A DNA stretch of 64,000 nucleotides from Epiperipatus broadwayi (lineage: Eukaryota; Animalia; Onychophora), in assembly GCA_028023455.1 (NCBI GenBank), contig JAQFVV010000003.1, positions 29,636,001 to 29,700,000 on the forward strand. The letters run 5' to 3'. Under the pieces are notes generated by a model, which worked only from the letters and a program-made list of their open reading frames with translations, did not search any database and was not told where the DNA came from. This document shows positions 7,584-55,857 of the stretch, piece after piece (the stretch's first letter is position 1; every line of letters begins with the position of its first letter). A program made the translations under genes and the position numbers.

Positions 7584-7619
7584 TACACAAGCTGTTTTTC
7601 ACAGCTACTGTATGGAGAG
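7584..7619. mobile_element. 36-bp mini-insertion of repeat family A, 13-bp TSD
   Basis: TATAGAGAAGCTT at 7571-7583 and 7620-7632 flanks a forward plus an inverted piece of family-A sequence. Confidence 0.7.
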
Positions 7620-8012
7620 TATAGAGAAGCTTGTTATTTCTTTAAAGACGGCGTAGCACTTTTGAGAGCTTATGACATTTTCATATTCATAGCAAGATGA
7701 AATAGAATACTAATGGAGAGATGAATATAACTATATATTTGAAGATATTTAAATTCAGTATTAAATATTTAAATTATAGCATCCATTTTTTGGAGAAAGG
7801 GAAGGATGAGTCTCTATGGTTGATAGCATTCATATTATTGGTTATAAGTCATGTTTTTGGAAGCAACTACTAAATAAATCCAATTAAACAGTCAAATGCA
7901 ATCTGTTAAATTTCTAAGAATATAAAAAATATCAATCTGTTACAATTCAAGTGTCAACTTTTTTGACAAAATTAAGATTTTAGAACAATGGAAGGTGGGA
8001 ATTCATCTTTTG

Positions 8013-8059
8013 AGCCAATAAATATCACATGATCACCATTATAGAGTTCTGCCTGTTTT
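8013..8059. mobile_element. 47-bp mini-insertion of repeat family A, 13-bp TSD
   Basis: AATTCATCTTTTG at 8000-8012 and 8060-8072. The insert is forward atcacatgatcacc plus inverted gagttctgcctgtttt. Confidence 0.75.
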
Positions 8060-8669
8060 AATTCATCTTTTGCTTATAGAACTTACCTTAACAACAGTTT
8101 GAAGATTCAGAATTTAGATAAGTTTGGAGTGTTATCATATGATTACATTTATAAAATTATTGCTTTGTGCACAATCAGATTTATTACCTAATAATAATCG
8201 AGTGTTGGGGTTTGCAAGTTAAAAATGACTATTTATTAGTCTGCTTTCAAAACAGGTTATATTTATTTGTTAATGGGATTTATTTAATCTTCTAGAAATC
8301 CAAGTATTCTTAGGTCAGAATGAATGCAATCATTTTTTTTTTATTAAAAATACTTTGATTACCTACACAACATTAAATTTTTTATGCAACATATTCATTA
8401 CTTTCATGTAACTGCACTTTGAAAATACTATTAAAACTTACTTAAGTATTTGGTTAAAGTCCTTTTTTTTTAACAAGATATTATGATAACAGATAAACAA
8501 TTATGACATTTTCTAGTTAACTACTGCTAGAGAAAATTATATTTTATTCTGGTTGTCTTAACTCTTTTATATTGATCCATTGAGATGATGTGATGACTTA
8601 GGCCAACTAATAAGATAGTTTATTTAGAAATCCATCTTGGGAGTCATTTACATTTTTCTTGCAATCATA

Positions 8670-9204
8670 TATTTAAAGAAGTAATAAATTATAAATTGTG
8701 CTTTACACAAACAAGTAAAGCTCAGTATTATAAGAATTATTAGGCTGAGTGCTTTTGGGAAACTTTAGTCCCCATATTCATAGCCTATCTTGGGAGTGAC
8801 AGCTTATGTTGAGATTTTAAACCGAAAAACTGGATAGTAATTTATGCAAATTTATTCAATATTTTCATATAGTCCACTTTCTGGAGATTGAGAAGCATGA
8901 TTCCTTCCAGTATATGCAAATTAATTCAATATTTTTATATACTCAGTTTTTCGATTTAAAATCTATTCCTTCCAGTATATGCAAATTAATTCAATATTTT
9001 TATATACTCAGTTTTTCGATTTAAAATCTCAACGTAACCAGACACTCCCAAGATAGGCTATGAATTTGGAGACTAAAGTTCTCCAAAAGCACTCGGCCTA
9101 ATAATTCTTATAATATTGAGCTTCACTTGTTTGCATAAAGCGCAATTTATAACTTACTACTTGAAGGTGAAGTAAAAACAAGGATTTTATTTCAATTAAA
9201 GCAG
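8670..9204. mobile_element. Inverted-arm insertion, family C, with decayed A3:U8 hammerhead motifs at 8741-8787(-) and 9054-9100(+)
   Basis: Arms run ~8681-9162 with a right-hand tail. A 10-bp direct repeat TGCAATCATA lies at 8660-8669 and 9205-9214. Left-arm motif: UAGGCU AUGAAUA U GGGGAC UAAA GUUUCCC AAAAG CA CUC AGCCUA. Confidence 0.7.
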
Positions 9205-10989
9205 TGCAATCATAACTAGTTGTAGTTATAAGAGTAATCTAGCACTCATAATAAGTTCAGCTATCATATATTAGCATTGAATGGTAACAAATTGTTATTT
9301 TCACAATGAAGTGCTATAGATTTTTTTTAAAAAAAAAAACATTTCTCAATTTTAATTAAAAATAGTTAAATCATAATTACAAGTATATTTGCAATATCTT
9401 GAATTTTTAATTGAAAAATAAATGCATCATTGTTGTTAAACATTTGATGAGTGAAGATTGTTTACAAAATGCCTGCATAGTGAAAGATAGTCAGTTTCTG
9501 TATTGGTGGATGATTGCAGTTTAGTGGAGTTATATTGAGGAATGCACTTTAGAAATTTGAAAAAACTTTTAAACATATATGTTATGTTTTTTTATTCTTA
9601 TTGAAAAATTTTTTGGTACTTAAAGATTAGTCTGGACACCAAGATTGATTGTGGATAATTCTGGATATGTATATATTATTAATCAATGAAATTAATTGTT
9701 AAAATTTTAAATTAATTTGTTTCCACAAATTATGATCTGAAAGATGGATATAATAGCATTATTAATTAGTGTCTATTGGATATTCAGGTTAAAAGTGGAT
9801 GATTCTGGAGAAGAATGAAGATAACTCCTGAAAGAAATTTATTTTATGTTAATTAGAAAGTGTTTCTTTTTTTTACTTAATTATATGTATAAAAATATTT
9901 TTATGCAATAATTTTTAAGAAACATTAAATAGATTAATTTTGAACTTAATATAAAATGTTTGAAACTAAAAGATTGGATCTTGTTTTATTACAATATCTG
10001 ATAAAAATAATTGGAAAAATAATGACAAGTTTTAAAAAAAAAATTTAAAACAGCATACTTCAGAGCAAAGATTTTTCCAATACTCTTTCATGGAAAAGTA
10101 TTATTACCTTTTTAAATTACCAAGTGTTTTTTCATCTTTATTTCACTCTTTAGTTAAGAATAATTACATATCTATTTTTGCATATCATATTACTTTCACC
10201 TTTTTTTAAATACTTCAATAATACTAATTTTTATATCAAAACTTTATTCTTACAGTTTCGACTGTTCTGCAGTTATCATTAAGAAAAGTGAAAATGGTAT
10301 ATGTAAATAAAAAAATGCATAAAAAAAAAAGAAATATATATATATATTTTTGACCAAATTAGATGGCTATTGCTGTTGGCTACAAGTCAGTTATCCGAGA
10401 GAAAATTACAAGTCTGATTAAAACATTTCAAATTTTTATCTAGCATGACATGACAAGTGAATATGCTACTGCTGCATTATTAGTTTATATGTTACACATT
10501 AGAATACTGTAAATCTGATTAATTGCCAATTTCTAACATTTGAGCATATTTGTCATCTATCATGATTTGTGCAAAGTGCATACTATATTAAAAATGCACC
10601 ATTTTGATTAACATATTTTCATTGCAGTTACTGTTAAAATGCTTACACTAAAATGTTCAGTATTTTATTCTTAACTTTAATCATTTGTCTGCAATTAAGA
10701 TTTTAATACAGGGTCAATCACCAATGATGCTATCAGTAGTAAACATTTGTTATTGTTGCAAAAAAAAAAAAAAAAAGATTGAACTGTTAAAAAAACAAAA
10801 AAATATTTTCAAATCGGCTTTTACAAAAATGTTCAAATAACTATAATTTAATTTTATTATTCATTTAGTATAGTAATGGATGTAATTTTTTTAAATCATT
10901 TATTATTTGTAAAACTTGCTTAACTACAATTACAAAGAAATAAAATCATATGTCATATGGCCTAATTTAACAAGCTTGTATTATAAATG

Positions 10990-11325
10990 CTATATATAGA
11001 GCTTGCAAATAAGGTTTTAACAAGCTTTTTCTATCCCTAATCCCAGACCGGATTCTGCTACTGGTTTCCTCAGTCAGTGAGGTGCTAGGATATTCACGCA
11101 TCAGATTAAAAATACCAGGAGAAGCCCAGCACTTTATGAATGTCTGAAATTTTCAGATTTTCTACTTAATAGTTATCCATTAGATAAAGTGCTGGGCTTA
11201 TCCTGGTATTTTTAATGTAATGCTTGAATATCCTAGCACTTCACTAAGGAAGCCAGTAGCAGAAACTGGTCTGGGGATATTCTGCAAAGCTTGTTAAGAG
11301 CTTATCTGTGAGCTCTCTATATAAC
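10990..11325. mobile_element. Inverted-arm insertion related to family A, with degenerate hammerhead motifs
   Basis: The arms are mirror images and share cccagac..gtttc..cagtgagg with family A. Right arm: CUUCA CUAAGGA AGC CAGUA GCA GAAAC UG GUC UGGGGA. Confidence 0.65.
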
Positions 11326-12949
11326 TTGCTTAACTATATTAAACCAATTATAATCTGTTTAAATATTTTAATATTATCATTTTTTAGTGATAAACACTGT
11401 ATTCCTTTTATTAAAGTCAATTCTGTTCAGCCTCTTTTAGAACCATCTTAAGCCTGGGTAATAATTGGACATCAGATGGTACAGTCCTATAATATATGCA
11501 TCACAGATGTTTCTGCCTTTGAGCTGCAAGAACTTAGGATTCAAAACGGCATTTAGGCTTCTAGTAGCCACATTTTATTCACTTATATTAGTCAAGCTAA
11601 TAACTTGAAATTAAAAAAACTTACCCAAACCCAATTTGTTTGTCTAGCTATACAGATCTGATCTTAGACCAGATTTTTTTAATACTTTAGTGACCTCTCC
11701 TTATGCTGAAACTCCTTTGGGTAAAAAGTTTAATATCAATTATAATATCACGACTTCTCGCAGCTTGCTTACATGCTTCCAAGAGCAGACAATGATTTCT
11801 TGTAAGCCTGAATAAACACTGGTTACCAAATGCTGTAGTGCTATTAATATTCACATTCCTAGACCACTTTGTGGATTTTGGTTTCAGCACTGAAGAATTA
11901 GGATTCAAAAATGGAATTAATTTGCTTGTATATCAAAGCAAATAACTTTTAATTCTTTATATTATTCAAGAGGTTGAAAATTAAAAAAAAGTCTAAAGTT
12001 TTTTAATTCAAACCAATTTCCCTTCAAAACTATAAAAATCTGATTCCAAGTCATTAAAATATATGAAAGTGATCTGGTGTTAAATCTATATATATATAGT
12101 TGTGCAAAAGAATTGACTTTTATTCAAAATTTAATTTCAAATTATTTACTCGAATAATTTAAAGAAATAAAAGGTAGTCACTAGATGCATAAACATATCA
12201 GTTTTAGCTTAGAATTTCAAATACTCTCTAAACAAAGGTAATGGATGTTTAATAGTTCAGGAGTATAGATATTATAGTACTATCATCTGATGTTCAGTGA
12301 CTACTCTGACTTATAATAAATGACTATAATGGGGTAAAAAGAACTACTTTTGGAAGTATATAATTTGAAGGAAATTATATGATATTAGTATTAATCTTTC
12401 TAACCAAACGATAAAAAATGGCATACTGTTGGCTTAAAACTGAAATCACTAAATATATATATATATATTGTAATGATAATTGCCCTTTCATAACAAATAC
12501 TAATTGGTCAAAATAACAATAAAATGACAATATTCACAAATTAATTTTAATATAGGAGAATTATAAATATCTGACAGGGTGACTGAGTTGTGGTGGGGTG
12601 ATTACACAAAATTTTAATTGACTAATTTATAAATCACAGATATGAACCAGAATGGGCACACATAAAAGCAGGTCTTTATGCAGAACCAGCCATGTTTCCT
12701 GGCTGTTATCATCTCCACATTAATATTAAAAGATAAAGTAAAATAATATACTTAGAATTCAGATGAGAAATAAACAAGTAACAAAATTATTAATAACAAT
12801 AATTTTAATTAATGAGCAGAATGAGAATACAACAAATCATATTTATATCTTAATATTTGTAAGGACAGCATGTGTGATACGAAAATTGTTTATTCACAAT
12901 TCATTAAAAAAAAGTTGAGGGTGTGACAATATTTACATCTGCAGCATTG

Positions 12950-15100
12950 CTGGACCAGGGGTTACCTTCGGTGGGCCCTTGGGTATGGCAAAAGCTCCCA
13001 TGCTCCCCGGTCAATCGAGCGGCAACCGATATGCGGGAACTTCCATGCTTATTAGAATCCGGGAAAATTACACAGAAAAATTCAATCCTATCAGCTCTGT
13101 TAAGTCCTATAGGTCCTTCTTGACTGGGGGTTCAAATTCACACATCACCAAATCTCATATCCTAGCTAAAATCAAAGCGTTTCAGAATGGGACTCGCTCC
13201 TGTCTGTATGGAATTCCCAAGTTCCTTCTGATATACCTTAGGTCCTTCATGGTTCCAATTGTGAAGAACATGGTGGACCATCTTGCTGATGGATGCTGAG
13301 AAATTAGTGGGATCTATCCCATTGCTATGGTGTCTCTTTTGAAAAAGCCTTATGGTCCTAGTGATTTGGGGGATTTAAGACCCATTTCTATGGTCCCATT
13401 GTCAATAAAGATGATTGAAAGTATGATCAAGGATGATGTTCAGCAGAACATCATACAACAATTGTCCTCTTAGCAATTTGCTAAGAAGGGAAGCTCTACT
13501 GCTGATGCTGTCATCTGGTTCTGCCTCATAGTTAACCATGTATGTAATAGGATGAACCAGCCAGTCGCGGTACAACTGGACTTTGCCAGTGCTTTTGATT
13601 GCATTAGAACTGAAGTGCTGCTCCTAAGGCATACCTCCACATGATAGAGAACCTGCTGCAAAATCATGGTTTTCTGTCTTTGAATGGTCGGGTCACTCCA
13701 GGTTTTTGGCCCTGTGTGTCCATCCCTCAGTGCTCACCACTGAGGACTCTCCTTTTTATAGCCTACATCAACCCTCCTGTTGACCATTGAGGCATCTCTA
13801 ACCGGAGTTGCCATTCCATTGCTGGGAGAGAACATTCACATTTCCTACATGAATGTGGTGGTGTTTCTCTCTTCCCGAGAGGTTGGTGAGCGAGAGAAGA
13901 TATTAGACCAGGTTGCTTGTGACTTTGGTCTAAAGATCAATGAAGAGTAATCAGCCTTATGGTATATTAGAACCAGGAAACATATCTCAGGGAGATTTAG
14001 AGCTCCCCTATAGAAATTTCTTGGCTTCAGAATGGCTTCCCCACCTCTCCCAATGTTATGAGAAAAGAGGCAGAGGCTTTGTTTGATAAGGTCGAAAAAA
14101 TTAAAATTCCTTGAGGATAGTTCCTGTCATTGTTAGGAAAGGTTGTGCTACTAAATGCAGTGGTGCTGCCAAAGATAACATACTTTTTGACAGGCTTGTC
14201 CTCAACAAGTGTTTATTAAATGAATTGAAATACTATGTAGGAAGCTGTGCTGGGGAGGGGGGAAGACACCAGTAATCAGCAAGAGGATCCTTCAACAACC
14301 TAAAAAGTTTAATAGTTTAAGGCTACACTTTCTACAGAATTTTCTACTGCAATGGACCCATAACATCTTAGTCAGATTGTTGTGCGAGAATGAGAAAATT
14401 GAGTGTCCCTTACCATGCATTAAAGTGGAGCACACAGATCGACCCCCTAAAGGGAGTGTTTGGTTGAAGCAACAGGTCTCAATAGTTATCAACATCAAGA
14501 CTTCCAACAACTTGTTTGTGAGGAAACCTTATTGGGATACTTATGGGCTCTCACATAATGATAAGGCTGAAGAAAAAAGTAAACCCTTACTTGGTATAAT
14601 TGGATTTGCAAGGCTGACCAAGAGGTTAAAATTAGAACCAAAACTAGTAGACTTTCAGTCTTGGAGTCCTCCCTACTCGAGCCTTTCTAAATTATAGGAG
14701 AGGGATTAGTTTGGACACTATATGTTATCTCTGCAATAAAGCTGAGGAGGATCATGAACATATTATGCAAGATTGTGAAAAATGGAACTATATACGCAGA
14801 TGGTTCCTAATGCAAATGGATAAAAATACTGCCACAGTTGATATTACCAAAGTAATCAAAAAAGGTGAATTTGAGTTGATCAAACTTGCAACTCAAGTAA
14901 ACTTTTCCATTTGGGCAGCCCGGAACATTTTTAATATTTCAAAGGGGAACTGAACAAACCTTTCATTTAACTTTTCTTAAGAAAATTAAAGAGCTGTAAA
15001 AGACTGGCAAGAGAATGTGTCAAGAATGGATGGCGGCTCAAACTTGATCCAGAGTTAACTTGGCCAATACTATATCAATTAGATAGATACTCTAATGAAC
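12950..15100 (+). mobile_element. Decayed, 5'-truncated L1/Tx1-clade non-LTR retrotransposon (RT plus C-terminal CCHC)
   Basis: Interrupted frames give DLGDLRPISMVP, QLDFASAFDCI, HISYMNVVVF (decayed YxDD), GKVVLLNAVVLPKITYF and CYLCNKAEEDHEHIMQDC. Many stops and frameshifts. Boundaries are approximate. Confidence 0.85.
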
Positions 15101-15707
15101 TCATTGATTAACATTCTCTAAGTAATCACTGTTATTATGTACATGAGATATCCTTGTGACAACAATTTATTATACATCAAACGCAAAAGACTTGTATCCA
15201 TATTCCCTGATGGGCTCATAACTTATATGACACTATTACAGAGAAGCAGGAACATTGATCAAACATTGAGTAAATGTTTGACTACCTCCATTGATTAAGG
15301 TCCATTCTCCTGATCTCTGAAAGGATAGATTAGGAGGCATTCCAGGCCTTGGGTTTGGACGAATGTAGTCACTACAGACTTGAAGGGGCCCAATTTATAT
15401 TTCTGATTATATGAAAATTATATAATTTTATTGTACAAAAATGTAAATAATTGTTTGTAGATTTACAAATCAGGTATGTTTGCACTACCATGAAGTGTGA
15501 TCAGGACCCTCAAGAGTTGGAATGAAGACATTGTGCATCATGACAAAATTCAAGTTGTAATTTATTAACCAGGCTGCCTTGATAGGTCCCTGTAGATTAT
15601 TTGACCAGGGTTATCAAAAGATGATTGTTGTACCCAGAAAAATTACATGTGAAATATTGATGTTAAATATGGTAATCCCTATGATTGTTTGTCAGTTGGA
15701 TTATATA

Positions 15708-17219
15708 AACAAAGCAAAACTCCATACAGTAGTGCCACCTGTGCTAAACAGAGTAATCAATGGATGCCAGAAGGCTTGTGCATAAAATCCCTATCTAATG
15801 CCTACTCATCCAATATCCCCAGACTAGTTTCTGGCTTGTGGCGTTCGTCAGTGAGGAGCTTTGGATCTGAGACACTGCATCTAAATCTTAGGATCTATTG
15901 CAACCACCTTTTATCTCTACTTAACTACAAAACTATGAGAATGAAATTGAAAACACAAAAAATATTTTCAATCTAAGCTCAATAGCTTATATAGTCATAT
16001 GGGTCTGAACTCAGTTCAGCACCCATATATTTTGGTGTCTTTGGCTCTTTAACAACCATAGCCACCACTATCCTATTAGAAAGGATTGGTGTTAAACCAT
16101 TAAGCATCACATGATCACATCTCCTATACTAGCACATAATTGCTTATAAACAAAGCAAAACTCCATACAGTAGTGCCACCTGTGCTAAACAGAGTAATCA
16201 ATGGATGCCAGAAGGCTTGTGCATAAAATCCCTATCTAAAGCCTACTCATCCAATATCCCCAGACTAGTTTCTGGCTTGTGGCCTTCGTCAGTGAGGAGT
16301 TTTGGATCTGAGAGCACTGCATCTAAATCTTAGGATCTAATGCAACCCTCTAGCAACCACCTTTTATCTCTACTTAACTACAAAACTATGAGAATGAAAT
16401 TGAAAACACAAAAAAATATTTTCAATCTAAGCTCAATAGCTTATATAGTCATATGGGTCTGAACTCAGTTCAGCACCCATATATTTTGGTGTCTTTGGCT
16501 CTTTAACAACCATAGCCACCACTATCCTATTAGGGAGGATTGGTGTTAAACCATTAAGCATCACATGCTCACATCTCCTATACTAGCACATAATTGTTTA
16601 TAAACAAAGCAAAACTCCATACAGTAGTGCCACCTGTGCTAAACAGAGTAATCAATGGATGCCAGAAGGCTTGTGCATAAATCCCTATCTAATGCCTACT
16701 CATCCAATATCCCCAGACTAGTTTCTGGCTTGTGGCCTTCGTCAGTGAGGAGTTTTGGATCTGAGAGCACTGCATCTAGATCTTAGGATCTAATGCAACC
16801 CCCTTTTATCTCTACTTAACTACAAAACTATGAGAATGAAATTGAAAAAAATATTTTCAATCTAAGCTCAATAGCTTATATAGTCATATTGAGCTTAGAT
16901 TGAAAATATTTTTTGTGTTTTCAATTTCATTCTCATAGTTTTGTAGTTAAGTAGAGATAAAAGGTGGTTGCTAGAGGGTTGCATTAGATCCTAAGATCTA
17001 GATGCAGTGCTCTCAGATCCAAAGCTCCTCACTGACAAAGGCCACAAGAAACTAGTCTGGGGATATTGGATGAGTAGGCATTAGATAGGGATTTTATGCA
17101 CAAGCCTTCTGGCATCCATTGATTACTCTGCTTAGCACAGGTAGCACTACTGTATGGAGTTTTGCTTTGTTTATAAACAATTATGTGCTAGTATAGGAGA
17201 TGTGATCATGTGATGCTTA
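15708..17219. mobile_element. Family A retrozyme-like insertion: about 2.6 tandem monomers (periods 441 and 454 bp) plus an inverted arm, 12-bp TSD
   Basis: TTGGATTATATA at 15696-15707 and 17220-17231. The hairpin apex is at ~16873-16887. HHR motifs at 15816-15857(-), 16257-16298(-), 16710-16751(-), with a broken copy at 17026-17063(+). Confidence 0.85.
16257..16298 (-). ncRNA. Minimal type-I hammerhead ribozyme motif (family A)
   Basis: UCCUCA CUGACGA AGGC CACAA GCCA GAAAC UA GUC/UGGGGA: 6-bp stem I, intact core, palindromic ACUAGU stem III, A-A mismatch closing stem II. An identical copy lies at 16710-16751. Confidence 0.75.
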
Positions 17220-18214: not shown

Positions 18215-18266
18215 CTATCATAGTAGGATCTACTGTAAAGTGAATTGCTTTCAAAAGCATGTATAA
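18215..18266 (-). CDS. Candidate 52-bp exon (IHAFESNSLYSRSYYD) of an unrecognised gene
   Basis: Strong acceptor cttctttcag, donor gtgagt and an open frame. No homology recognised. Confidence 0.3.
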
Positions 18267-18689
18267 CTGAAAGAAGTAATGTTGGCATTTCTTTTTCTCT
18301 CTCTTACACAGACATAAATAAACTTTAATAATGTAATGTAAAATGGCTTCATCTTAATGGGCTTAGAAGTCAAACCTTTCCTTCTTCTAAAATCATTGTG
18401 TACCATAGTAAATTCAACGTGCTTATTTCTAAATAATTTTTCTAGCAGTTTTTCTTCTTCTTTGTAGTATTCCATTTTAATATAATCTATTTTGTTAATT
18501 CCAGTATACTATACTCACATTAAGACCTAAACTAAATAATCTTTATCTCTCCTTCTCTTCCATGCAATTTATTCCGATTATCTTTCAATATCCTACACTC
18601 AAAAAACTAAAAATTTAATATCCGTCCTATTTCCACCTAAAACACATCTCGAGTCCAATTTCTTTCTCTCTTGACTAAAATTTAAACCA

Positions 18690-19745
18690 TTAAAACATCA
18701 TATGATCACCATTGGACTTATGCCCACATCTGTTAAAACAGCAGTAACTTCATACAGTAATGCTATCCAATGCAAGCCATAATTAATTGATGGTTGCTAG
18801 GTTTGTGCATCAAAATTTTATTTAGTGCCTACTCATTCAATATCTTCAGACTAGTTTATAGTTTAAGGTTTTCATCAGTAAAGAGTATTGCATGTGAGAG
18901 CACTGCATCTAGATTTTTGGATCTAATACAATCCTCCACCAACTATAAAATTTCAATCCATGCTCATATAAATCCGAACCTAGTTCAGTATCTATACATT
19001 TTGGGGTTTTTTTTTTTAAAAAAAAAACCAGTCACTAATATCCTTTGGGCAGGATTGATATTAAACCATTAAAACATCACGACTACCATTTCTTATGTGT
19101 ATATAATCTGTTAAAACAGTAGCAATTTTCTCCATATAGTAATGTCTCCCAATACAAGTCATGCTAGAAAGTTTTTGCATCAAAATCCCTATCTAGTGCC
19201 TATCATCTAATACCACCAGACTAGTTTATAGCTTGTGGCTTTTGTCAGTGAGGAACCTTGGATCTGAGAGCATTGCACCTAGATCTTAGGATCTAATACA
19301 ACTTTTTAGTTAACTGTAAACACAATTGTTTTCAATCCAAGCCATTCACTTATTTACTGATGCAGATCTGAATCCAATTCAGTATCTATATATTTTGGTG
19401 TCATCCTGGCCTTGCTATTAAAAAAAAAAAACCCCAAAATGTATAGATGCTGAACTGGGTTCAGATTTATGTGTTTACAAGTGAATTAGCTTCAATTGAA
19501 AACATAACTGCTTTTATTTTGCTTTATAGTTAACTAAAAGATCGCTGCTGGAGGATTGCATTAGATCCAAAATTCTAGATGCAGTGCTCTCAGATCCAAG
19601 GCTTCTCCGATGAAAGCTACAAACTAATTTGGGGATATTGGATGAATATATTAGGGATTTTGATGCACAAACCTTCTGGCATTCATTAATTACTATGGCT
19701 TGCAATGAATGGCACTACTATATGGAGAAAATAGCTAATGTTTAA
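18690..19745. mobile_element. Older, diverged family A insertion (two forward monomers plus an inverted arm)
   Basis: Diverged copies of the same monomer. HHR cores are mutated and no clean TSD is visible. Confidence 0.75.
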
Positions 19746-32598: not shown

Positions 32599-32800
32599 TA
32601 TAATATTAATATCATCTATATTCTTTATTACTTTTACAATGCCTTTTTTACGACCTAATATGACAGTTATTGCTGGGGCAATCAAAACTCTCATATTAGC
32701 TTGTAAAAAAAAGCATTGTAAAAGTAATAAAGAACATAGATGATATTAATATTATATGGATTTGGCAATGCAATAGGAAAGAAAAAGTTATAATACTTCA
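32599..32800. mobile_element. AT-rich inverted-arm insertion with a right-hand tail and 12-bp TSD; no HHR seen
   Basis: TATGGATAAAAG at 32587-32598 and 32801-32812. Arms run ~32600-32757. Confidence 0.6.
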
Positions 32801-33110: not shown

Positions 33111-33445
33111 ACAGAGGCACCACCCAATGCAAGCCAGAATAATCAATGGATGCAGGAAGATTTGTGCAAAAAATCCCTATCTAATGCCTACTCATCCAAT
33201 ATCCCCAGACTAATTTCTAGATTGTGGCTTTCATCAGTGAGGAGCTTTGGATCTGAGAGCACTACCCTAAATCTTAGGATCTAATACAACCCTCCATTAG
33301 ATAGGTATTTTATGCACAAATCTTCCTGCATACATTGATTACTCTGGTTTGCACTGAGTGGTGCTACTGTATGGAAAGTTTTGCCTCTGTGAAAAACAGC
33401 TTGTGTAAGCACAAAGAATAGTGATCATGTGATGTTTGATGGTTT
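33111..33445. mobile_element. Family A insertion (forward plus inverted fragment), 14-bp TSD, HHR motif at 33202-33243(-)
   Basis: AATAGCAGAGTTTC at 33097-33110 and 33446-33459. Motif: UCCUCA CUGAUGA AAGCCACAAUCUA GAAAU UA GUC UGGGGA (weak stem II). Confidence 0.85.
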
Positions 33446-42351: not shown

Positions 42352-42885
42352 TATATATATGTGCTCTGCGCACAGTTAATGAAGCTATTAATAAATTGTC
42401 AAAATTTTTACTGCCAGGCACTTTCGGGACAGTCTACAGTCCCATATTCATGGTGAGTTATTCTGTTAATAACTATAAAACTATGCAAATTTTATGCAAA
42501 TTTATATGCAGATGTTACGTGGACCATTTACGAGATAGGGAATAGCAGGCCTCTCTTCTGATGATTGCCGATGGGTCAGCCGCAATGAAGTAAGCTTCCC
42601 TAACTTTACGTTTGGTATCGTTTGATTGCCATCGGCAATCAACAGAAGAGAGGCCTGCTATTCCCTATCTCGTAAATGGTCCATGTAACATCTGCATATA
42701 AATTTGCATAGTTTTATAGTTATTAACAGAATAACTCGCCATGAATATGGGACTGTAGACTGTCCCGAAAGCGCTTGGCAGTAAAAATTTTGACAATTTA
42801 TTAATAGCTTCATTAACTGTGCACAGAGCACATATATATATATTAATTTATTTAAGTGTTAATGAAGTAAAATCTTAACTATTTC
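42352..42885. mobile_element. Young family C inverted-arm insertion, 13-bp TSD, A3:U8 hammerhead motifs at 42410-42458(-) and 42734-42782(+)
   Basis: AAAAAATATTTAA at 42339-42351 and 42886-42898. Near-perfect ~215-bp arms (42361-42831) plus a ~45-bp right-hand tail. Confidence 0.8.
42734..42782 (+). ncRNA. Variant minimal type-I hammerhead motif (A3:U8, extra U after A9)
   Basis: ACU(C)GCC AUGAAUA U GGGAC UGUAGACU GUCCC GAAAG CG CUU/GGCAGU, with palindromic AAGCGCUU. Confidence 0.65.
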
Positions 42886-43470: not shown

Positions 43471-43503
<33 letters not shown>

Positions 43504-45200: not shown

Positions 45201-45740
45201 AGAGTCTGACTAATGATTTTAAAAAGGATAGTATAATGACTAATAGTGATGATAATACTCTATAACTATTGTATAATGAAATATATAGATTTAATAATGG
45301 CTCTTTATGATTACAGATTCTAAATACAATCTTGTTTCATATTTTCAAAAATAACTGATAATTTGCAAATAACCATCCTACAAAAATGATTAGAAAATAC
45401 ATCAATGCATTCTTTACTTCCAAATACAAGTTTATATTATTTTTTTAAAACTAATATATGCCTAAATATGCTACAAAAATATAATTTAAAATGTGTATCT
45501 CACATAATTTCATAAATGCACTTAAAGGAATTATTTATCATTTCATGTTATATAATGATTGTTTAATAAATGAGAAATATATATGTGCATTTGGTAAATG
45601 ATAATATAACAACATATTGTTAAAACATTTTTTATTAGTCTGGTCATTCGCTAAATTTTGACAAAATTAAAATAACTAGATAATAAAATGAGTTTGAATA
45701 CATGAACAATTTTTCTATTATAAATTTTTTAGTATTTTTT

Positions 45741-46248
45741 GGAAAAGAATAAAAATCTTTATGCTGTTCTTCCATAAAATAATGAGAAAATAATAATAAA
45801 TTCTTTACAACAGCTATATAAATATCAATAATAAGTTTATACATAAAAAGTCTGATTTGGTGCCCTTTTCAAATGTTAATAATCTATTTAACATTAACGA
45901 AATATTTCAGATATAAAACCATCTAGTGTTCAATAATGAAATTAAAACAAGCAATAACAATATAAATCATTAAAATAAATCAAAACCCTCATATATAAAT
46001 CCAGTAATTACAAGATAATTGACTATAGGGTTTTGATTTATTTTAATGATTTATATTGTTATTGCTTGTTTTAATTCCATTATTGAATACTAGATGGTTT
46101 TATGTCTGAAATAGTTCATTAACGTTAAATAGATTATTAATATTTGAAAAGGGCATCAAACCAGGTGCTGAAAAAGATTTTTTATGTATAAAATTATTAT
46201 TGATATTTATATAGCTGTTGTAAAGAATTTATTATTATTTTCTGACTA
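45741..46248. mobile_element. AT-rich inverted-arm insertion (family D) with a left-hand tail, probable 12-bp TSD and possible U3:A8 HHR relic at 46140-46187(+)
   Basis: TTAGTATTTTTT at 45729-45740 and 46249-46260. Arms run ~45785-46240. Confidence 0.6.
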
Positions 46249-46678
46249 TTAGTATTTTTTATAGAGATTAAATATTGTCTGAATTGGGTAATTTTCTTTT
46301 TTTCATTTATATAGAACATGTTGAAAAAAAAAACCCAAACATTTATTTGATAAATTAGTTCCATAAATAAATTTATTTAATTTTATTTAGCAAAATAGTG
46401 AATTCATTTTATAATTATAAATGTTCATATATTAATGTGGGTATCAACAATAGAATGTTCAAAATCTGAACTTGGAAGATCTTTTTAAAAATTTTTTAAG
46501 ACAAGATTTGATTTTCGCTATGTCAATACTCTTTCCACTGAATGAAATCCAAATATGCAGGAACTAATGAAGAAAATGTTTAGAAAATGAACCGTAAACA
46601 CAAACAACAGCATTAATCTTAAAGGATTAGTAAAAGCTTAGATTTTTAATAACTTAAAAAAAAAAAAAAATTACTTAC

Positions 46679-46862: not shown

Positions 46863-47624
46863 CTAAAAATAAAGAATGCAATTTATTAATTAACATGCTA
46901 TTTACTTTATGATACAAAATGTACATAAAGTGAATATATACAATCAATTAAATACATTTTATTAAGAATATATTTTTTGATATGTACAGGATTAGATATG
47001 ACCTGAAGCAGCTGTACAATCATTTTATTATTTTGGAAATAATTCACAAAGAAAAAAGTTTAACTTAAAGAGTTCATTATTTAAACTATTCCTAACTTGT
47101 TAGTACTTTCAATCAGTCGTTTGTTGGTTTATTTCCATAAATTAAATCAATCTTGATTATGCACACACAATTCTTTATAGTGTTATGCTATAATGTATAT
47201 TTTCTTATTACAATCCCTTATTTCATTCTGTTTTCTCTTTTTTGTTAATTTTTCACCACAGCATTCTCTTCACTGCTTATGGGCTTCTAGTTTCGCAAGC
47301 ACCTTACTGCTCACATTACATTTAGCACTGAACTGTTCTCTGGATATGTTCTTAACATTCAGCTAACATTTTAGATAGTTCTTTTTGTTTTTTAGATATA
47401 ATTTGCATAAAAGTTTTATTATTATCTGTATGCTAATTAACAGATTCAGGTTATTATGCATTTTAATTATTTCTAGAGTGACTTTTATTGCCTTTTACAT
47501 TGATTAATTTTATAAGCACACACATGCAACTTTATTTATTATTATTCACTTTAATCAATATACGCAATACTTCCCCTTCACTTTAGAAATAAAGAGTTTA
47601 ATCGCAAATATAATATAATCTTAA

Positions 47625-47711
47625 CAGAGGCAAAACTCTTTATACAGTAGTACTACCCAGTGCAAGCCAAAATAATCAATGGATGCAAAATCATGTGATG
47701 TTTGTGGTTTA
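47625..47711. mobile_element. 87-bp family A mini-insertion, 13-bp TSD
   Basis: AATATAATCTTAA at 47612-47624 and 47712-47724. The insert is a forward piece plus an inverted atcatgtgatg tip. Confidence 0.8.
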
Positions 47712-50700
47712 AATATAATCTTAAAAATTTTGTAGGTTTTCTTCATACTCTGGCCTTTCTTAAGAAGAGAGAGGCTTTCTTCTTCTTCTTTAGAGAAAAG
47801 CCTTTCTTTTTTTGTTGTGATTCACCATTTAATTCAGCAGGTAAATCCTGTAAGTCTTGGCTCAAAAGATTTTTTTTCTAGATCTATTTTGGTATTAGTA
47901 AATACATCCATTTTAACACTCCGTATTTTCTAGAGAATCTTCTACATGAACAGTAACTACACTTGTAATCTTATTCATTATCTTTATCGATTCAACACAA
48001 CAGCTTTTTATATGGTTAATGTGCCGTCTTACTTCTCTACTGTCTTCCAGTTTAATTTTGCTTTTTTGCTTAGACAGTAGCATAATTATAACTCCTGGTA
48101 TCCATTTTTTCCTCAGTATGTTTCTTATCCAGACAGTCTGTTCTATACTGAACTTAGTATTTTCAGAAATATTTCCTTGCTTTTAGTTTTGTCTGGAATC
48201 AACACAGAAATATATGATCTAAAATAGTATTTCATTAATAATTCAGTTGGAGTTTTCTTAGTAACTGAACTTAATGTGAAGTGCTGATAAAGCATCACTG
48301 TTGTTAGTGAATCATGAATATCAACATATCCCATTCAATTCAGTTTGCACTTTAGATGGTGAACATCCTTTACTGCTAATCTATTTGATTCTTGGTGGTA
48401 TTGTATTCCCTCCTGAGTGAGAAAATCCTTAAATTGTATTGAACAAAATCCTGCATCACTGTCCATAATTACAAGTTCAGGATATTCATGTGTGGCAAAA
48501 AGTTTCATAATTTTATTAAGTTATCTGCACTAGCATTTTTTTACCATTATGCATTCCATCTATTTGGAGTATAAATTGATAACTACAAAATATATATATC
48601 TATGAAATGATCTTACATGATCTAAGTGGACCCTTTCCCATGCTTTTGTAGCTTCAGGTCATGGTTGGAACTATTTACTAGGTAACTTTGATGTTTCATG
48701 ACAAAGGTTTTTTCAATATCATTATTCATGTCCAGTCACTAGATATATGAATGGACTAATTCTTTCATGAGCACTGTTCTGGGGTTTCTTCATTTAACAA
48801 CTATAGCACTTTTCCTCCTCTCAGTTGGAATTAAAACTCAGTCTATTATAAAAATGTCTTCTTGACGTAATTTTTCGCACTTTTGGCCATCCCTGTTTAA
48901 TCCAATTTTTAATTAATTGCTATCCTATGTCATTTCTTGTCCATTTCACTATTAGTTTACTAGCAGTGGAAATTTGTTCTGGATTTTAATTTTCAGTTTG
49001 CCTCTCTTGACACATTCAATTATTACCAGATATCATTACATATAACAGTAAATTTTTTATGTTTGTTTACATTTACCAGCATCATTATTATTCCTTTTAT
49101 ATTGATAGAATTCTCATTTATATCTGTCGCAACTAATTTTGTCTTTTTAATTTGTTATTTTATTGTTCCATTTTCTATTAATGGCTATCCAATCCTTAAA
49201 AAAATAAAAAAAGTTGAAAATATATCGAATTTACTAGATATCACAACTTGTAATCAAATCATAAAAATGGAAATTGGTAGTTTAATTTTGCTTAGACAGT
49301 ATCATAATTATAACTCCTGGTATCCATTTTTTCCTTAGTATGTTTCTTATCCAGACAGTCTGTCCTATACTGAACTTAGTATTTTCAGAAATATTTTCTT
49401 GCTTTTAGTTTTGTCTGGAATCAACACAGAAATATATGATCTAAAATAGTATTTCATTAATAATTCACCTGGAGTTTTCTTAGTAACTGAACTTAATGTG
49501 AAGTGCTGATAAAGCATCACTGTTGTTAGTAAATCATGAATATCAACATATCCCATTCAATTCAGTTTGCATTTTAGACGGTGAACATCCTTTACTGCTA
49601 ATCTATTTGATTCTTGGTGCTATTGTATTCCCTCCTGAGTGAGAAAATCCTTAAATTGCATTGAACAAAATCCTGCATCATAGTCCATAATTATAAGTTC
49701 AGGATATTCATGTGTGGCAAAAAGTTTGGTAAAAAATAATTTAAAGTGATTGGTTTATCTTCATGCTTTCATTTTCAGTGCTTAAGATTTGCCCATACTT
49801 AAGCATTTGGGTTGAAAGAATAGATGGATTCATTCTATTCTTTCGCAAAGACTTTATCTTGTGTTGGAAATGACAGTATTAATTTATTATTAACATTCAT
49901 AAAAAAGCGCATGTACATTAGCTTGAAATGCTGATCTTTAGTTTATTATAATTTTATTAAGTTATCTGCACTAGCATTTTTTACCATTATGCATTCCATC
50001 TATTTGGAGTATAAATTGATAACTACAAGAAATATATATCTATGAAATGGTCTTACATAATTTAAGTGGACCCTTTCCCATGCTTTTGTAGCTTCAGGTC
50101 ATGGTTTGAACTATTTACTAGGTAACTTTGCTGTTTCATGACAAAGGTTTTTTCAATATCATTATTCATATCCAGTCACTAGATATATGAATGGACTAAT
50201 TCTTTCATGAGCACTATTCTGGGGTTTTCTTCATTTAACAACTGTAGCACTTTTCCTCGACTCAGGTGGAATTAAAACTCAGTCTATCAACTGTAGCACT
50301 TTTCCTCCCCTCAGTTGAAATTAAAACGCAGTCTATCATAAAAATACCTTCTTGACATGTAGACAAACTTTCCTGAGCATTCAGATTTGCAGAACTATGT
50401 AATTTTTCGCACTTTTGGCCATCCCTGTTTAATCCAATTTTTAATTAATTGCTATCCTATGTCATTTCTTGTCCATTTCACTATAAGTTTACAAGCAGTG
50501 GAAATTTGTTCTGGATTTTAATTTTCAGTTTGCATCTCTTGACACATTCAATTATTCCCAGACATCATTACATATAACAGTAAATAAAAGTCATAGATCA
50601 ATTCATAGATCACATGACCCTATCTCTTAAGCTTGTAAGTTATAAACAGTGAGGATTGCCAATTCCTCTACAAGCTTTATGATAAATGCCTAGCCAGAGC

Positions 50701-50738
50701 CAGCACTTAAAATATCTCTGTCAGGAATCCCTCCCCAA

Positions 50739-50781
50739 ACCCCTGACCATGGTTTCGTGCTTTGGCACTCCTCAGAGAGGT
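50739..50781 (-). ncRNA. Canonical minimal type-I hammerhead ribozyme motif (family B, left arm)
   Basis: Exact reverse complement of 50817-50859. Confidence 0.85.
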
Positions 50782-50816
50782 GTCAGGGTAGATCTAGTGT
50801 CTGAACCTACCCTGAC

Positions 50817-50859
50817 ACCTCTCTGAGGAGTGCCAAAGCACGAAACCATGGTCAGGGGT
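50817..50859 (+). ncRNA. Canonical minimal type-I hammerhead ribozyme motif (family B, right arm)
   Basis: ACCUCU CUGAGGA GUGC CAAA GCAC GAAAC CAUG GUC/AGGGGU: full core, 4-bp stem II, palindromic ACCAUGGU, predicted cleavage after C50853. Confidence 0.85.
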
Positions 50860-53299
50860 TTGGGGAGGGATTCCTGACAGAGATATTTTAAGTGCTATTT
50901 TAAGTGCTGGCTCTGGCTAGGCATTTATCATAAAGCTTGTAGAGGAATTGGCAATCCTCACTGTTTATAACAGTAAATTTTTTATGTGTTTGTTTACATT
51001 TACCAGCATCATTATTATTCCTTTTATATTGATAGAATTCTCATTTATGTCTGTCGCAACTAATTTTGCCTTTTTTAATTTGTTATTTTATTGTTCCATT
51101 TTCTATTAATGGCTATCCAATCCTTAAAAAAGTAAAGAAAGTTGAAAATATATCGAATTTACTAGATATTACAATTTGTAATCAAATCACAAAAATGGAA
51201 ATTGGTAGTGGCACAGATGTATCACTCATATCTTTTAACATTTCACAGCATTCATAACAACTCCTCATCTCAATTTACTATTTGCAGATAAATCAGGTTT
51301 AGTCATTTATTGTTTGTTTGTGCAAACCTTTAACAAATGAGCTATCAATTCATAATTATAATACTTGTATTTCTTGAATTTACACATTTTTTTCTATGTG
51401 TTTTTTCTTTCCGCAGCAGGTGGGTTTCTGTTTAGTATTCTCTATCATCTGTGCTTTCACCTTGTTTATACATGTGCTTAGAATAACTTCATTTGCCATA
51501 TTTTTAAATTCTAGTGCATGTTTTAGGATACTTTTGTTTACTATTCCTGAATGAATGGCAGCAGTACAATTTAGTGAAAACTCACTTAGCAATATTTGTC
51601 TAAATTTTTTCTCACATGCTCCATAACAACTGAACTAATATCATTCCCTCTAAGTAATCTCTATATTTGCATTCCTTTGATAATTCTCACAGCACTATAT
51701 CATATCTAAATTTCTTCTCACATGCTCCCTAACAACTGAACTAATATCATTTCCTCTAAGTAATCTCTATATTTGCATTCCTTTGATAATTCTCGCAGCA
51801 CTATATCATATTCCTGTATGTTTTCATTTGGTGACAGCATTTTGTTTCATAAACGAAAATGCGCTATGTATTTCAAGGTGATTGGTTTGAAATATGAATT
51901 TAACTTTTGCAGCATTTCTTCGTATCAAATATCTTCAGAAATTTTTAGGTCGCAGAGATGATTTGTTAATCGCAGCACATCCTTTCCTGACATAATGTTA
52001 TTAATTATCTTGTATCTTTCAACAAGACTAACAAATATTTGCCATTGCCCTGAACTGCTTATGTTAAAAGGCATTATTGACTCCTCTGCATTGCCATGTT
52101 CTATGTCCACATTACTAACTGATGCTTAACACCAGAGTTGATCTAGGGAGCTGGACACTCATTTTATTATTTTGGAAATAATACACAAAGAAAAAAGTTT
52201 AACTTAGCAACAAGTTTATTTCTCAGAATAAATAATATTAATAGCTTGTTGCACTCATTTTATTATTTTGGAAGTAATACATAAAGAAAAAAATTTAACT
52301 TAGTAACAAGTTTATTACTCGGAATAAATAATATTAATAACTTGTATTTTCAATTAGCAGCTTGCTGATTGAATTCTGTAAATTAAATCAGTCTTGATTA
52401 TGTATGCACAGTTTTTTATAGTGTCGAACTATAATGCTGCATTTTCTTATTACAGTCCTTTATTACACTTTGTTATCTTCAGCATATTTCACTGCTCACT
52501 GTTTTTGCAAGCATCTTACTGTTCATATTACATTTAACAGTGAACTGCTCTCTGGATATGTTCTTAACATTCTGCTGACATTTTAGATAGACCTTTTTGT
52601 TTTTTAGATATAATTGCATAAAACAATTTTATTATTATCTCCATACAAATTAGCACTTTCCAGGTTATTTTGATATTTGTATAACTTAATTTATTATGCA
52701 TCTTAACTATTTCTAGAGTGACTTATTATATTTTATATTGGCTAATTTTACATGCACACATGTAATTTTATTTATTATTATTATTACACACTTTAGTCAA
52801 TATACAGCAGTTTTATATGAAGAGGAAAAAATGACTAAAGCTTTTAAAAAAGTAGTTGCGGAAAAAAATGAAAAACATTGGTTAATAAGATTAGAAAAAC
52901 TGATAAGTGAAGAGAGATAAAGATGTGATTAACATATTATTTTTATTAAGTAAACAGGTTTGTGATTTTTATGTATAGAATAAAAAAAATTCATTATTAT
53001 TGTTGTGGAAAATTTAAGATATTTGAAATGAAAACTGTTATTAAAAACAATGTGTACTAAGTAGAACATTATTTTCCATTTTTAAGATGGTAGTTATTTG
53101 AATAGTTTATAGGCAATTTCATTCACTAGGCATCAAGATGCAAAATATTTTAAATAAGAACTGATTTAAAAAAAAAACAAGAACCATATCTTCTGGTTTC
53201 TAGATTTAGTATGCTGGTAATTTTATTATTATTATCAAATCAAAATGATATACAACATTGTTTTGAATATAGCCTCAAGTGCTTTATCACTCAGTAATG

Positions 53300-53696
53300 G
53301 AAGAAAAATCTTCAGCAATTTTTAGCTTTAATGGTCATTAACTTACGGTCATAAATCAATTTAAATAATGCAAACTTTGGTATTGAGATGAAGTACTGAC
53401 TACAATGAGTTGCTATTGCATGTAATAATTTAAAAAGAGTATTTCAATTAAACTGATTAATAAGATTCTAAAAATATGACAATAAAATGCTTATTAGATA
53501 TAATCCTATCAAATCTTCTGTTTTAAAGACACATCATTGGATTGAGCATGTGAAGAGACCAAACAATAAAATTTCTAACCAGTATTTTATGGTAAACTTG
53601 AGGATTGTTGTCTTGGGAGACAGACCTCATTTACAGTATAGAGATTATTTCAAAAATATTCTAAAAAGGTACAACATTGAGAATTTTCATAGAAAG
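53300..53696 (+). mobile_element. RTE-clade 3' fragment interrupted by gypsy element 2 (appears to resume at ~60192-60260)
   Basis: HHWIEHVKRP...GDRPHLQYRDYFKNILKRYNI matches W.GHV.R...GRP...Y.D..K..LK. KIQWWSTIKQDVKAF follows 60192. Confidence 0.55.
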
Positions 53697-54318
53697 GGCT
53701 ATGTTCTGAGGATCTCTAAAGACCAGTCACACAGCATAATAAATTACACAGTATACAAACAATAGGTACATAATCGTGTTTATTAACATTTATTTAAGAT
53801 AGACATTAAACTAGAAAACATTTAGACATTTTGAGTTTAAACTTCATAACATATCAAATAATAACAATAAGAATAACCGCTATTGATTTATTAGGACGGA
53901 CTAACAGAATTCTAAAGTTTTACACTTTGTTCAGACCCTTTTTGTCCAATCTTAGAGTACTGCTTCTTCTGCCTTAGCACCAACTCCAACACATTCCGTC
54001 TCATTTCTGTGCAGGAGTAGCCTTCTCATGTCCTTATATCAGTTTTTTCTAATGCTGTCATTTGCATACACATATTTTGAAATATATTTTAGTTGCAGCG
54101 TTCTCTTTATTAGTTTTCTAGAATTTTAGGGAGTAATTATGAGTGAAAATAATTTGTCCATGTCTATCAATAAATACACTTTATTTATATGAAATTGCAT
54201 ATGCAGACATTCCATTCCTCCGCTTATTCTAAAAAATCACAAACTTACTAGCAGACTTAATCTTTTAAATTAAACAGATGATGGGTCAATTTGTGGGTTC
54301 TAGGAGTTATTATATCAA

Positions 54319-55857
54319 AACAGGCAAAACTCTCTACACATATTGCCACTCAGTGCAAGCCAGGGTGATCAATGGATGCCAGAAGGCTTGTGAATAAAAT
54401 CCCCATCTAGTGCCTTACTCATCCAATATCCCCAGACTAGTTTCAAGCTTATGGCCTTTGTCAGTGAGGAGCCTTGGATCTGAGAGCACTCTTAGGATCT
54501 AATGCAACCCTCCAGCAGCCACCTTTTATCTCTACTTAACTACAAAACTATAAGACTTAAATTGAAAACACTATAACATTTTCAATCCAAGCTCATCAAC
54601 TTATGTAGTTATACAGGTCTGAACTCAGTTCAGTACCTATATATTTTGGTGTCTTTGGTTCTTTAATAACCATAGCCACCATTATCCTATTAGGCAGGAT
54701 TGTTTTTAAGCCAATAAACATCACATGATCACCATTTCTTATGCTTGCTCTTAACTGTTATTAAAACAGGCAAAACTCTCTATACGTATTGCCACTCAGT
54801 GCAAGCCATAAGGCTTGTGCATAAAATCCCCATCTAGTACCTATTCATCCAATATCCCCAGACTAGTTTCTGGCTTGTGACTTCATCAGTGAGGAGCCTT
54901 GGATCTGAGAGCACTGCACCTAGATCTTAGGATACAATGCAACACTCCAGCAGCTACTTTTCATCTCTACTTAACTACAAAACTATGGGACTTAAATTGA
55001 AAACACTATAATATTTTCAATCCAAGCTCATCAACTTATATAGTCATATAGGTCTGAACTCAGTTCAGTACCTATAAATTTAGACGTCTTTGGTTCTTTA
55101 ATAACCATAACCACGACTATCCTATTAGGCAGGATGTACTGCCATTCAGTGCAAGCCAGAGTAATCAATGGATGCCAGAAGGCTTGTGCTCTCAGATCCA
55201 AGGCCCCTCACTGATGAAGGCCACAAGTCAGAAACTAGTCGGGGAATATTGGATGAGTAGGCACTAGATGGGGATTTTATGCACAAGCCTTCTGGCATTC
55301 ATTGATTACTCTGGTTTGCACTGAGTGGCAATACATATAGAAAATTTTGCCTGTTTTAATAACAGTTAAGAGCAAGCATAAGAAATGGTGATCATGTTAT
55401 GTTTATTGGCTTAAAACCAATCCTGCCTAATAGGATAGTGGTGGCTATGGTTATTAAAGAACCAAAGACACCAAAATATATAGGTACTGAATTGAGTTCA
55501 GACCTATATGACTATATAAGCTGATGAGCTTGGATTGAAAATATTATAGTGTTTCCAATTTAAGTCTCATAGTTTTGTAGTTAAGTAGAGATAAAAGGTG
55601 GCTGCTGGAGTGTTGCATTGGATCCTAAGATCTAGGTGCAGTGCTCTCAGATCCAAGGTTCCTCACTGACGAAGGTCACAAGCCAGAAACTAGTCTGGGG
55701 ATATTGGATGAGTAGGCACTAGATGGGGATTTTATGCACAAGCCTTCTGGCATCCATTGATTACTCTAGCTTGGACTGAGTGGCAATACGTATAGTGAAT
55801 TTTGCCTGTTTTAATAACAATTAAGAGCAAGCATAAAAAATGGTGATCATGTGATAA
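54319..55857. mobile_element. Family A retrozyme-like insertion (two forward and two inverted monomers, period ~446 bp), 12-bp TSD, nested in gypsy element 2
   Basis: TTATTATATCAA at 54307-54318 and 55858-55869. HHR motifs at 54429-54470(-), 54855-54895(-), ~55205-55245(+) and 55660-55701(+). Confidence 0.88.
55660..55701 (+). ncRNA. Minimal type-I hammerhead motif (family A)
   Basis: UCCUCA CUGACGA AGGU CACAA GCCA GAAAC UA GUC/UGGGGA. Confidence 0.7.

Follow-up and report, generated by a model that had tools for sequence, protein, structure and literature searches.

A stretch of 64,000 nucleotides from the onychophoran Epiperipatus broadwayi (assembly GCA_028023455.1, contig JAQFVV010000003.1, positions 29,636,001 to 29,700,000), here called the window, was analysed for insertions which are built from two inverted pieces, are associated with hammerhead ribozyme motifs and are flanked by target-site duplications (TSDs). 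The window is AT-rich animal DNA with 20-37% G+C per 2-kb bin. Thirteen such insertions were found, which together comprise 7162 bp or 11% of the window. They are very probably retrotransposition footprints of the machinery of Penelope-like elements (PLEs), acting on non-coding or 5'-truncated RNAs with PLE-type 3' regions. Each listed site was read directly, inverted and direct repeats were mapped and the junctions were verified by script. Ten of the insertions had been located in a preliminary description, which reported two inverted pieces and flanking direct repeats of 12-14 bp; all ten were recovered at the same starts with exact repeats, and the two-piece structure holds for all 13.

Insertions and target sites

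In every one of the 13 insertions, a piece in antisense orientation to the hammerhead-bearing strand precedes a piece in sense orientation. In 12 of them, one arm ends at a precise position, called the proximal site, and the other arm ends 42-66 nt further on, at the distal site. The stretch between both sites, called the tail, is present in one arm only.

Family A has seven members in the window (15708, 33111, 47625, 54319, 8013, 7584 and 18682), which range from 36 to 1539 bp with variable internal truncation. At 15708..17219 (A1; TSD 15696-15707 / 17220-17231, 12 bp), the left arm contains 2.6 tandem antisense units of 441-454 nt from the proximal site, with one hammerhead each, and the right arm contains 0.66 sense unit plus a 48-nt tail. 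The insertion at 54319..55857 (A3; TSD 54307-54318 / 55858-55869, 12 bp) has three pieces: an antisense piece of ~816 nt which begins at the proximal site, a second antisense piece of 54 nt which follows an internal jump, and a sense piece of 672 nt with a 47-nt tail at its end. At 33111..33445 (A2; TSD 33097-33110 / 33446-33459, 14 bp), the tail-less left arm carries a hammerhead and reaches 111 nt farther upstream than the shorter right arm with its 54-nt tail. The insertion at 18682..19732 (A4), absent from the preliminary list, is old: it has a left tail of ~61-66 nt and a tail-less right arm, the arms are ~73% alike and the TSD is decayed and not recoverable. The other three members are micro-insertions with TSDs of 13 bp, the arms of which do not overlap. 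That at 47625..47711 (A2, 87 bp; TSD 47612-47624 / 47712-47724) joins 63 nt antisense from the proximal site to a sense piece of ~22 nt which extends to the distal site, and that at 8013..8059 (A3, 47 bp; TSD 8000-8012 / 8060-8072) joins 28 nt antisense from the distal site to a sense piece of 17-19 nt which stops at the proximal site. The third, at 7584..7619 (A2, 36 bp; TSD 7571-7583 / 7620-7632), consists of 21 nt antisense and 15 nt sense with atypical start points.

The remaining six insertions belong to other families. Family D is represented by a young insertion of 380 bp at 50586..50965 (TSD 50573-50585 / 50966-50978, 13 bp), the arms of which are 98-100% complementary; it has a 59-nt left tail and a 15-nt loop continuous with the tail-less right arm. 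The family F insertion at 10927..11322 (TSD 10913-10926 / 11323-11336, 14 bp), also missing from the preliminary list, has a 65-nt left tail and a 46-nt loop, which again continues into the tail-less right arm. Family B at 42352..42885 (TSD 42339-42351 / 42886-42898, 13 bp) carries one outward-reading hammerhead-like motif per arm, a 45-nt right tail and a 54-nt loop. Its relative B' at 8670..9204 (TSD 8660-8669 / 9205-9214, 10 bp), the third insertion added to the list, has head-to-head arms and a 42-nt right tail. Family C at 45741..46248 (TSD 45729-45740 / 46249-46260, 12 bp) has a 44-nt left tail and a 37-nt loop, and family E at 32599..32800 (202 bp; TSD 32587-32598 / 32801-32812, 12 bp) has a 44-nt right tail and is too short to contain a hammerhead ~100 nt upstream, if there is any. 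The initial description of the families as unrelated was overstated. Families A, D and F have a conserved tail block in common, A and F additionally the 3' flank of the hammerhead, and B and B' are related to each other; C and E do stand separate. Family A is a retrozyme-like tandem of non-coding units of 441-454 nt with one hammerhead each, and the other families are single-unit 3' fragments. A k-mer match at 52700 to the family B tail is common to an older paralog and is no insertion.

Exact TSDs of 10-14 bp were found at 12 of the 13 insertions. Direct repeats of 12-16 bp are common in AT-rich DNA (96 in the window versus 53 in block shuffles) and, therefore, their position and not their mere existence carries the TSD signal. 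For the chance control, only the outer ends of the inverted arms were used as boundaries, with a slack of 85 nt, and 3000 random placements of the same span were drawn. A flanking direct repeat of ≥ 12 bp was present at 6 of 9 elements compared to 1.4% of the random placements (binomial p ~5e-10). The possibility that TSD matches are no commoner than chance, which had been named as a refutation at the outset, is dismissed by this positional excess. When direct repeats of 12-16 bp were screened de novo, the background of 53 in shuffles was too high for further micro-insertions to be called. Exact flanking repeats also occur at 34307-34360 (26 bp, 14-bp repeats) and 42998-43074 (53 bp, 12-bp repeats), which are candidate micro-insertions of other families in a high repeat background.

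For the insertion at 50586, the empty target site is present in the window itself. The 13-bp target stands single and uninterrupted at 49041..49053 in the paralogous segment 48980-49120, and the filled copy (50573-50978) has the target twice, flanking the 380-bp insertion. The empty site stems from a local tandem segmental duplication of ~1.2 kb (48064-49281 / 49286-51209, 95-97% identity). The second copy of this duplication contains an extra 220 bp (49728-49947), which have a short 'agttt' microhomology at their bounds and no PLE-type signature. Logan contigs of public runs were checked for empty sites or polymorphism; no joint across a whole insertion was listed, and the runs with the best coverage probably derive from the same sample as the assembly.

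Long inverted arms would also be expected of foldback or MITE-type (miniature inverted-repeat transposable element) transposons moving at the DNA level, or of assembly artefacts which create inverted duplications, and the inverted structures of PLEs are known to trouble assemblies (Craig 2021 PMC8557442). However, the ends of the insertions are asymmetric, members of one family vary between 36 bp and 1.5 kb and are internally truncated to different extents, and exact TSDs and an empty site are found. In addition, short contigs from independent runs show numerous further genomic copies of family D which stop at the same element position, 50582-50586, with differing flanks. Such an origin is, thus, barely credible. 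The early conclusion from the size range that these are no terminal-inverted-repeat or MITE elements stands, with 36-1539 bp in one family, asymmetric ends and TSDs of 10-14 bp.

Hammerhead motifs and RNA templates

Hammerheads were searched on both strands with a strict type-I descriptor and shuffled-sequence controls, and copies of the motifs were then mapped by similarity. The descriptor found five intact motifs compared to 0.02 expected in shuffles. Two identical family A motifs are located in the 15708 insertion at 16263-16292 (-) and 16716-16745 (-), with a helix I of 6 bp, a helix II of 3 bp and a helix III of 2 bp with palindromic loop. Two family D motifs are present in the 50586 insertion at 50745-50775 (-) and 50823-50853 (+), and one A3 motif is found in the 54319 insertion at 55666-55695 (+). 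Over all intact motifs, helix I has 6 bp and helix II 3-4 bp, and a palindromic loop closes a helix III of 2-3 bp; this geometry matches the dimer-type architecture reported for metazoan and PLE hammerheads (Cervera 2014 PMC4209133). The sequences qualify as putative type-I hammerheads, since they combine the conserved core (CUGANGA ... GAAA) and all three helices with an H17 that is predicted to be cleavable.

Including decayed copies, 17 motifs were mapped by similarity. All 17 point outward, i.e., they are encoded on the minus strand in left arms and on the plus strand in right arms, as the preliminary description had claimed. In variant copies, the pairing of helix II is retained via G-U changes, and in the family A motifs, helix II is bordered on either end by unpaired A residues. 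The core is canonical in families A, D and F, and is decayed in the F copy of this window. Family B (42352, and the decayed copy at 8670) has the same layout, in which the core pair C3-G8 is replaced by A3-U8. At 8670-9204, the A3-U8 motif is present in both arms with the catalytic G12 changed to A; either the source was inactive or the arms decayed in parallel. For family C, a weak candidate at 46144-46190 (+) has a U3-A8 core, a helix II of 6 bp and a helix I of only four A-U-rich pairs; in the other arm, 11 nt of helix II are deleted.

The scan of both strands suggested at the outset was successful with descriptor and similarity, whereas an Rfam search of the window, at the gathering cut-off and at E-values up to 10, reported no hammerhead. 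Some miRNA-like Rfam matches on the 50586 hairpin are spurious. The flank of the family A hammerhead had no match in metagenome contigs in two scans.

Positions within family A were measured using the 454-nt unit as a ruler. On this unit, the hammerhead cut is at position 340 and the proximal site at 454. Hammerhead cut sites do not coincide with any arm end or turning point, and the arms of the insertions at 15708 and 54319 pass two or three uncut hammerhead sites; therefore, the templates were not processed small ribozyme RNAs. In this respect, the preliminary description, according to which a set of small ribozyme RNAs had been mobilised, has to be revised: with up to three uncut sites per arm, the templates are uncleaved and partly multimeric RNAs, the multimeric ones being those of family A. 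Ribozyme cleavage did not shape the inserted copies; in the PLE reaction in vitro it is likewise dispensable (Frangieh 2024 PMC11167929). When the tailed arm of the 15708 insertion was compared to the individual units of the other arm, all units differed by ~2% and none was singled out; the multimer may stem from a tandem-array transcript or from rolling-circle copying of a circle.

Start sites and priming at both nicks

The proximal end is constant within ~2 nt in six independent family A insertions. The distal site of this family is located ~47-66 nt beyond the proximal site and follows the conserved block common to A, D and F. Relative to the hammerhead cut, the proximal site lies 112-114 nt downstream in families A and D and ~51-64 nt downstream in B and F. 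The same asymmetry is visible in all ten long insertions, in which the palindrome is offset by 0-9 nt from one end but stops 42-75 nt before the opposite end. A tail of ~45 nt on one arm only had initially been noted for several insertions; its one-sidedness is confirmed, but none of the long insertions lacks it. The tails are of at least four types. This number also bears on the earlier proposal of one reverse transcriptase (RT)/endonuclease system for all insertions, of which the PLE-type footprint is supported, whereas a single enzyme system does not follow from the data.

The 5' inversions of L1 elements arise by twin priming and show TSDs, AT-rich targets and inverted 5' pieces. An enzyme of this type, i.e., of a long interspersed nuclear element (LINE), could produce TSDs of 12-14 bp in AT-rich targets together with inverted 5' pieces, and a weak zf-RVT match is present at 14711-14953. 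Common to L1 twin priming and the insertions described here is that both nicks of a staggered break prime cDNA, resulting in an inverted and a direct piece between TSDs. In L1, however, the second primer anneals internally, and adjacent segments of a poly(A) RNA are copied. The insertions of the window start at two fixed sites near the 3' end, both arms usually, and in all long insertions, hold the same 3' region instead of adjacent segments, and the ends are specific internal sequences. No poly(A) was found at any insertion end and there is no microsatellite 3' end. As the one-sided tail is, furthermore, PLE-specific, a LINE-type enzyme has next to no likelihood as the source.

The sequence shows that the target was opened by a staggered break of 12-14 bp and that each 3'-OH primed cDNA synthesis on the element RNA. 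Since both nicks primed on this RNA, its 3' side is outermost in both arms and the hammerheads point outward. One cDNA began at the proximal site and the other 42-66 nt further downstream at the distal site. The copies were truncated at 5' to a variable extent, the shortest to a few tens of nucleotides. The two cDNAs would then have been joined head to head, most simply if the leading RT jumped to the end of the other one. In vitro, both target strands are cleaved and extended by a purified PLE protein, which starts reverse transcription at two internal RNA sites, with the tail being the sequence between them (Frangieh 2024 PMC11167929). The earlier suggestion of priming at both target nicks agrees with these data, and the micro-insertions show two initiations in vivo.

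Both start sites are used once each in 12 of the 13 insertions, which has a p-value of ~2e-4 under independent choice at each nick. In the micro-insertions at 8013 and 47625, the arms do not overlap and one begins at the proximal, the other at the distal site; they therefore represent two separate initiations and not snap-back copying. The latter would be the outcome of target-primed reverse transcription at a single nick followed by self-priming, in which the first arm serves as the template for the second. Self-priming is favoured by Arkhipova 2013 (PMC3846280) and has been proposed for PLE inverted repeats with palindromic junctions. It would fit that in 8 of the 10 long insertions both arms change direction at almost the same point of the template, which leaves a 15-55-nt loop, and that private variants are common to both arms of the 50586 insertion. 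In this insertion, three minority variants, determined against the other genomic family D copies, are present in complementary form in both arms, and both arms must therefore stem from one template or source. As the sole mechanism, however, snap-back is contradicted by the non-overlapping arms at 8013, 47625 and 7584, and pure snap-back models are excluded by these micro-insertions. Moreover, the tail is found on the shorter-reaching arm and could not be copied from a tail-less first strand, the loop is continuous with the tail-less arm wherever it can be assigned, and the insertions at 33111 and 54319 turn asymmetrically. Self-priming at a single nick is, hence, considered improbable.

In all eight determinable cases, it is the arm with the proximal start which extends farther 5'. 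Reach was determined with the unit ruler for 15708, 33111 and 54319, by mapping of the micro-insertions for 8013 and 47625, and via a related copy in a contig of another organism for 50586 and 10927. The case of 42352 is probable only and was judged by continuity of the reading frame.

One tailed and one tail-less arm, also without overlap, would result if a cDNA started at the distal site of a sense RNA and then jumped to an antisense transcript with its 5' end at the proximal site, which would in this case be a transcription start and not a start of reverse transcription. Bidirectional promoter motifs have been proposed for the long terminal repeat-like pLTRs of PLEs (Arkhipova 2013 PMC3846280). 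In vitro, however, both target strands are extended from two internal sites of the sense RNA (Frangieh 2024 PMC11167929), and a jump to an antisense transcript is unsupported and regarded as highly improbable.

Within the PLE reading, with priming at both nicks, the manner in which both arms are coordinated can be specified only tentatively. In the preferred version, two reverse transcriptases may copy one RNA in tandem, with the enzyme starting at the proximal site leading and then jumping onto the end of the trailing cDNA. This would explain the once-each rule, the near-symmetric turns, why the loop belongs to the tail-less arm and why variants are shared. Taken together, the single use of each site, the farther reach of the proximal arm and the shared variants at 50586 could further mean that a PLE dimer copies a single RNA molecule in tandem, with neither of its two protomers overtaking the other, and the one-sided tail and the head-to-head structure would follow from this; such an arrangement is rather doubtful. 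These three rules have not previously been stated for PLEs, and the once-each rule and the farther reach of the proximal arm may add mechanistic detail.

Several observations weigh against an assignment to PLEs. The Pfam query set consisted of 34 open reading frame (ORF) pieces, i.e., all 17 ORFs of ≥ 75 amino acids (aa) in the window and pieces of ≥ 40 aa in 11.5-15.7 kb, and no match to an RT or GIY-YIG domain was found in any of them. In the window, no family could be linked to an autonomous PLE partner. In family B (42352), an open frame of 45 codons lies upstream of the hammerhead-like motif and stops ~50 nt short of it. A full-library HMMER search with the 45 residues gave one bacterial repeat protein, which was spurious according to Pfam and BLASTP, and this frame gave no link of family B to a coding PLE. 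The insertion at 7584 has the same topology as those at 8013 and 47625, but its start points are atypical. A conserved or significant fold was not found in the tail and start-site region (z = -0.55), nor was the AC-rich stem-loop of the anole element. No convincing hammerhead is present in families C and E; there is a weak candidate only in C, and the arms of E may be too short. Finally, TSDs (12-14 bp versus 8-10 bp in a rotifer) and tails (42-66 nt versus 30-40 bp) are both longer than published.

Since neither RT nor GIY-YIG was found among the ORFs of the window, which agrees with the preliminary description in that no autonomous PLE ORF was seen, the copies are not PLEs proper but products of the PLE mechanism that are either truncated or non-autonomous. 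Apart from that, Pfam gave weak matches only, namely zf-RVT at 14711-14953 and sub-threshold matches elsewhere. The zf-RVT match (E-value 0.006, sub-threshold) belongs to a plus-strand ORF, which may be part of a decayed non-LTR retrotransposon adjoining the 15708 insertion; the region 12000-15700 has a higher G+C content (~36%) and many short plus-strand ORFs. The single ORF of ≥ 120 codons in the window, 58627-59223 (-), encodes 198 aa and has sub-threshold Pfam matches only (DUF5751, LAGLIDADG_1).

Known systems, copy number and other repeats

The footprint known of PLEs comprises an adjacent inverted and 5'-truncated copy, partial tandems, a repeat with hammerheads and a tail of 30-40 bp that is confined to one end (Craig 2021 PMC8557442; Arkhipova 2013 PMC3846280; Cervera 2014 PMC4209133). 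Junctions are palindromic and the pLTRs are sufficient in trans (Craig 2021 PMC8557442; Arkhipova 2013 PMC3846280). Naiad-type PLEs lack a hammerhead (Craig 2021 PMC8557442), and TSDs of 8-10 bp were reported for PLEs of Adineta vaga (Arkhipova 2013 PMC3846280). The insertions of the window resemble genomic PLEs of the Penelope/Poseidon, Neptune and Naiad groups in the head-to-head 5'-truncated copy, partial tandems, the tail at one end, the hammerhead in the repeat, short TSDs of variable length and near-palindromic junctions. They differ in the missing RT/GIY-YIG ORF, in tails of 42-66 nt instead of 30-40 bp, in TSDs of 12-14 bp instead of the 8-10 bp of A. vaga and in truncation down to 36 bp. 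The pattern is, thus, real but of an already described kind, and its differences from the known PLE footprint are of degree.

Agreement with the Poseidon element of Anolis carolinensis (PAc) in vitro concerns the extension of both strands, two adjacent internal start sites which are not homologous to the target, a tail between these sites and AT-rich targets (Frangieh 2024 PMC11167929). Hammerhead cleavage is unneeded in both and the ends are not marked by cuts. In contrast, no strand preference was reported for PAc, whereas each site is used once per insertion here, and an AC-rich stem-loop is not detectable in the window.

Non-autonomous repeats with type-I hammerheads have been proposed to be PLE derivatives (Li et al. 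2026, bioRxiv 10.64898/2026.07.22.740005; also Cervera and de la Pena 2014, PMC4209133, and 2020). Family A shares with the metazoan non-LTR retrozymes the non-coding tandem units with one type-I hammerhead each (helix III of 1-2 bp, palindromic loop) and TSDs of > 4 bp, and the dependence on PLE enzymes proposed for retrozymes also fits this family. Unlike in retrozymes, the insertions end at PLE start sites and not at ribozyme cuts, and families B-F are single-unit fragments; the unit length of 441-454 nt is a further difference.

The window provides a dense natural sample, with 13 events, of PLE integration in vivo, which is poorly understood. Two internal start sites and priming at both nicks, known in vitro for one anole element, are confirmed at the genomic level, and this result is extended to non-coding hammerhead repeats. 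The regularities in the use of the start sites and in arm reach could make the question of head-to-head PLE insertion testable. For annotation, it is relevant that families of very high copy number are invisible to Rfam; a descriptor of TSD, tail and two arms would find them.

In public sequence runs, the summed contig depth of families A and D is 1e6-1e7 compared to ~35-80 on unique flanks, which indicates a very high copy number, although depth does not equal copy number. Near-identical copies are present in runs labelled as other organisms. In one run labelled RNA, families A and D likewise have a far higher summed depth than the flanks, whereby carry-over of DNA and circles are not separable in contigs.

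Further repeats of the window were also recorded. Two pairs of dispersed direct duplications, 47010-47546 / 52149-52782 and 53698-54214 / 59633-60191, have 76-95% identity and may be another repeat family or duplicated parts of genes. Tandem duplications are located at 1021-1145, 28229-28311, 37281-37508 and 51599-51811, with units of 63, 43, 114 and 106 bp, respectively, and 92-100% identity; they are unrelated to the hammerhead families.

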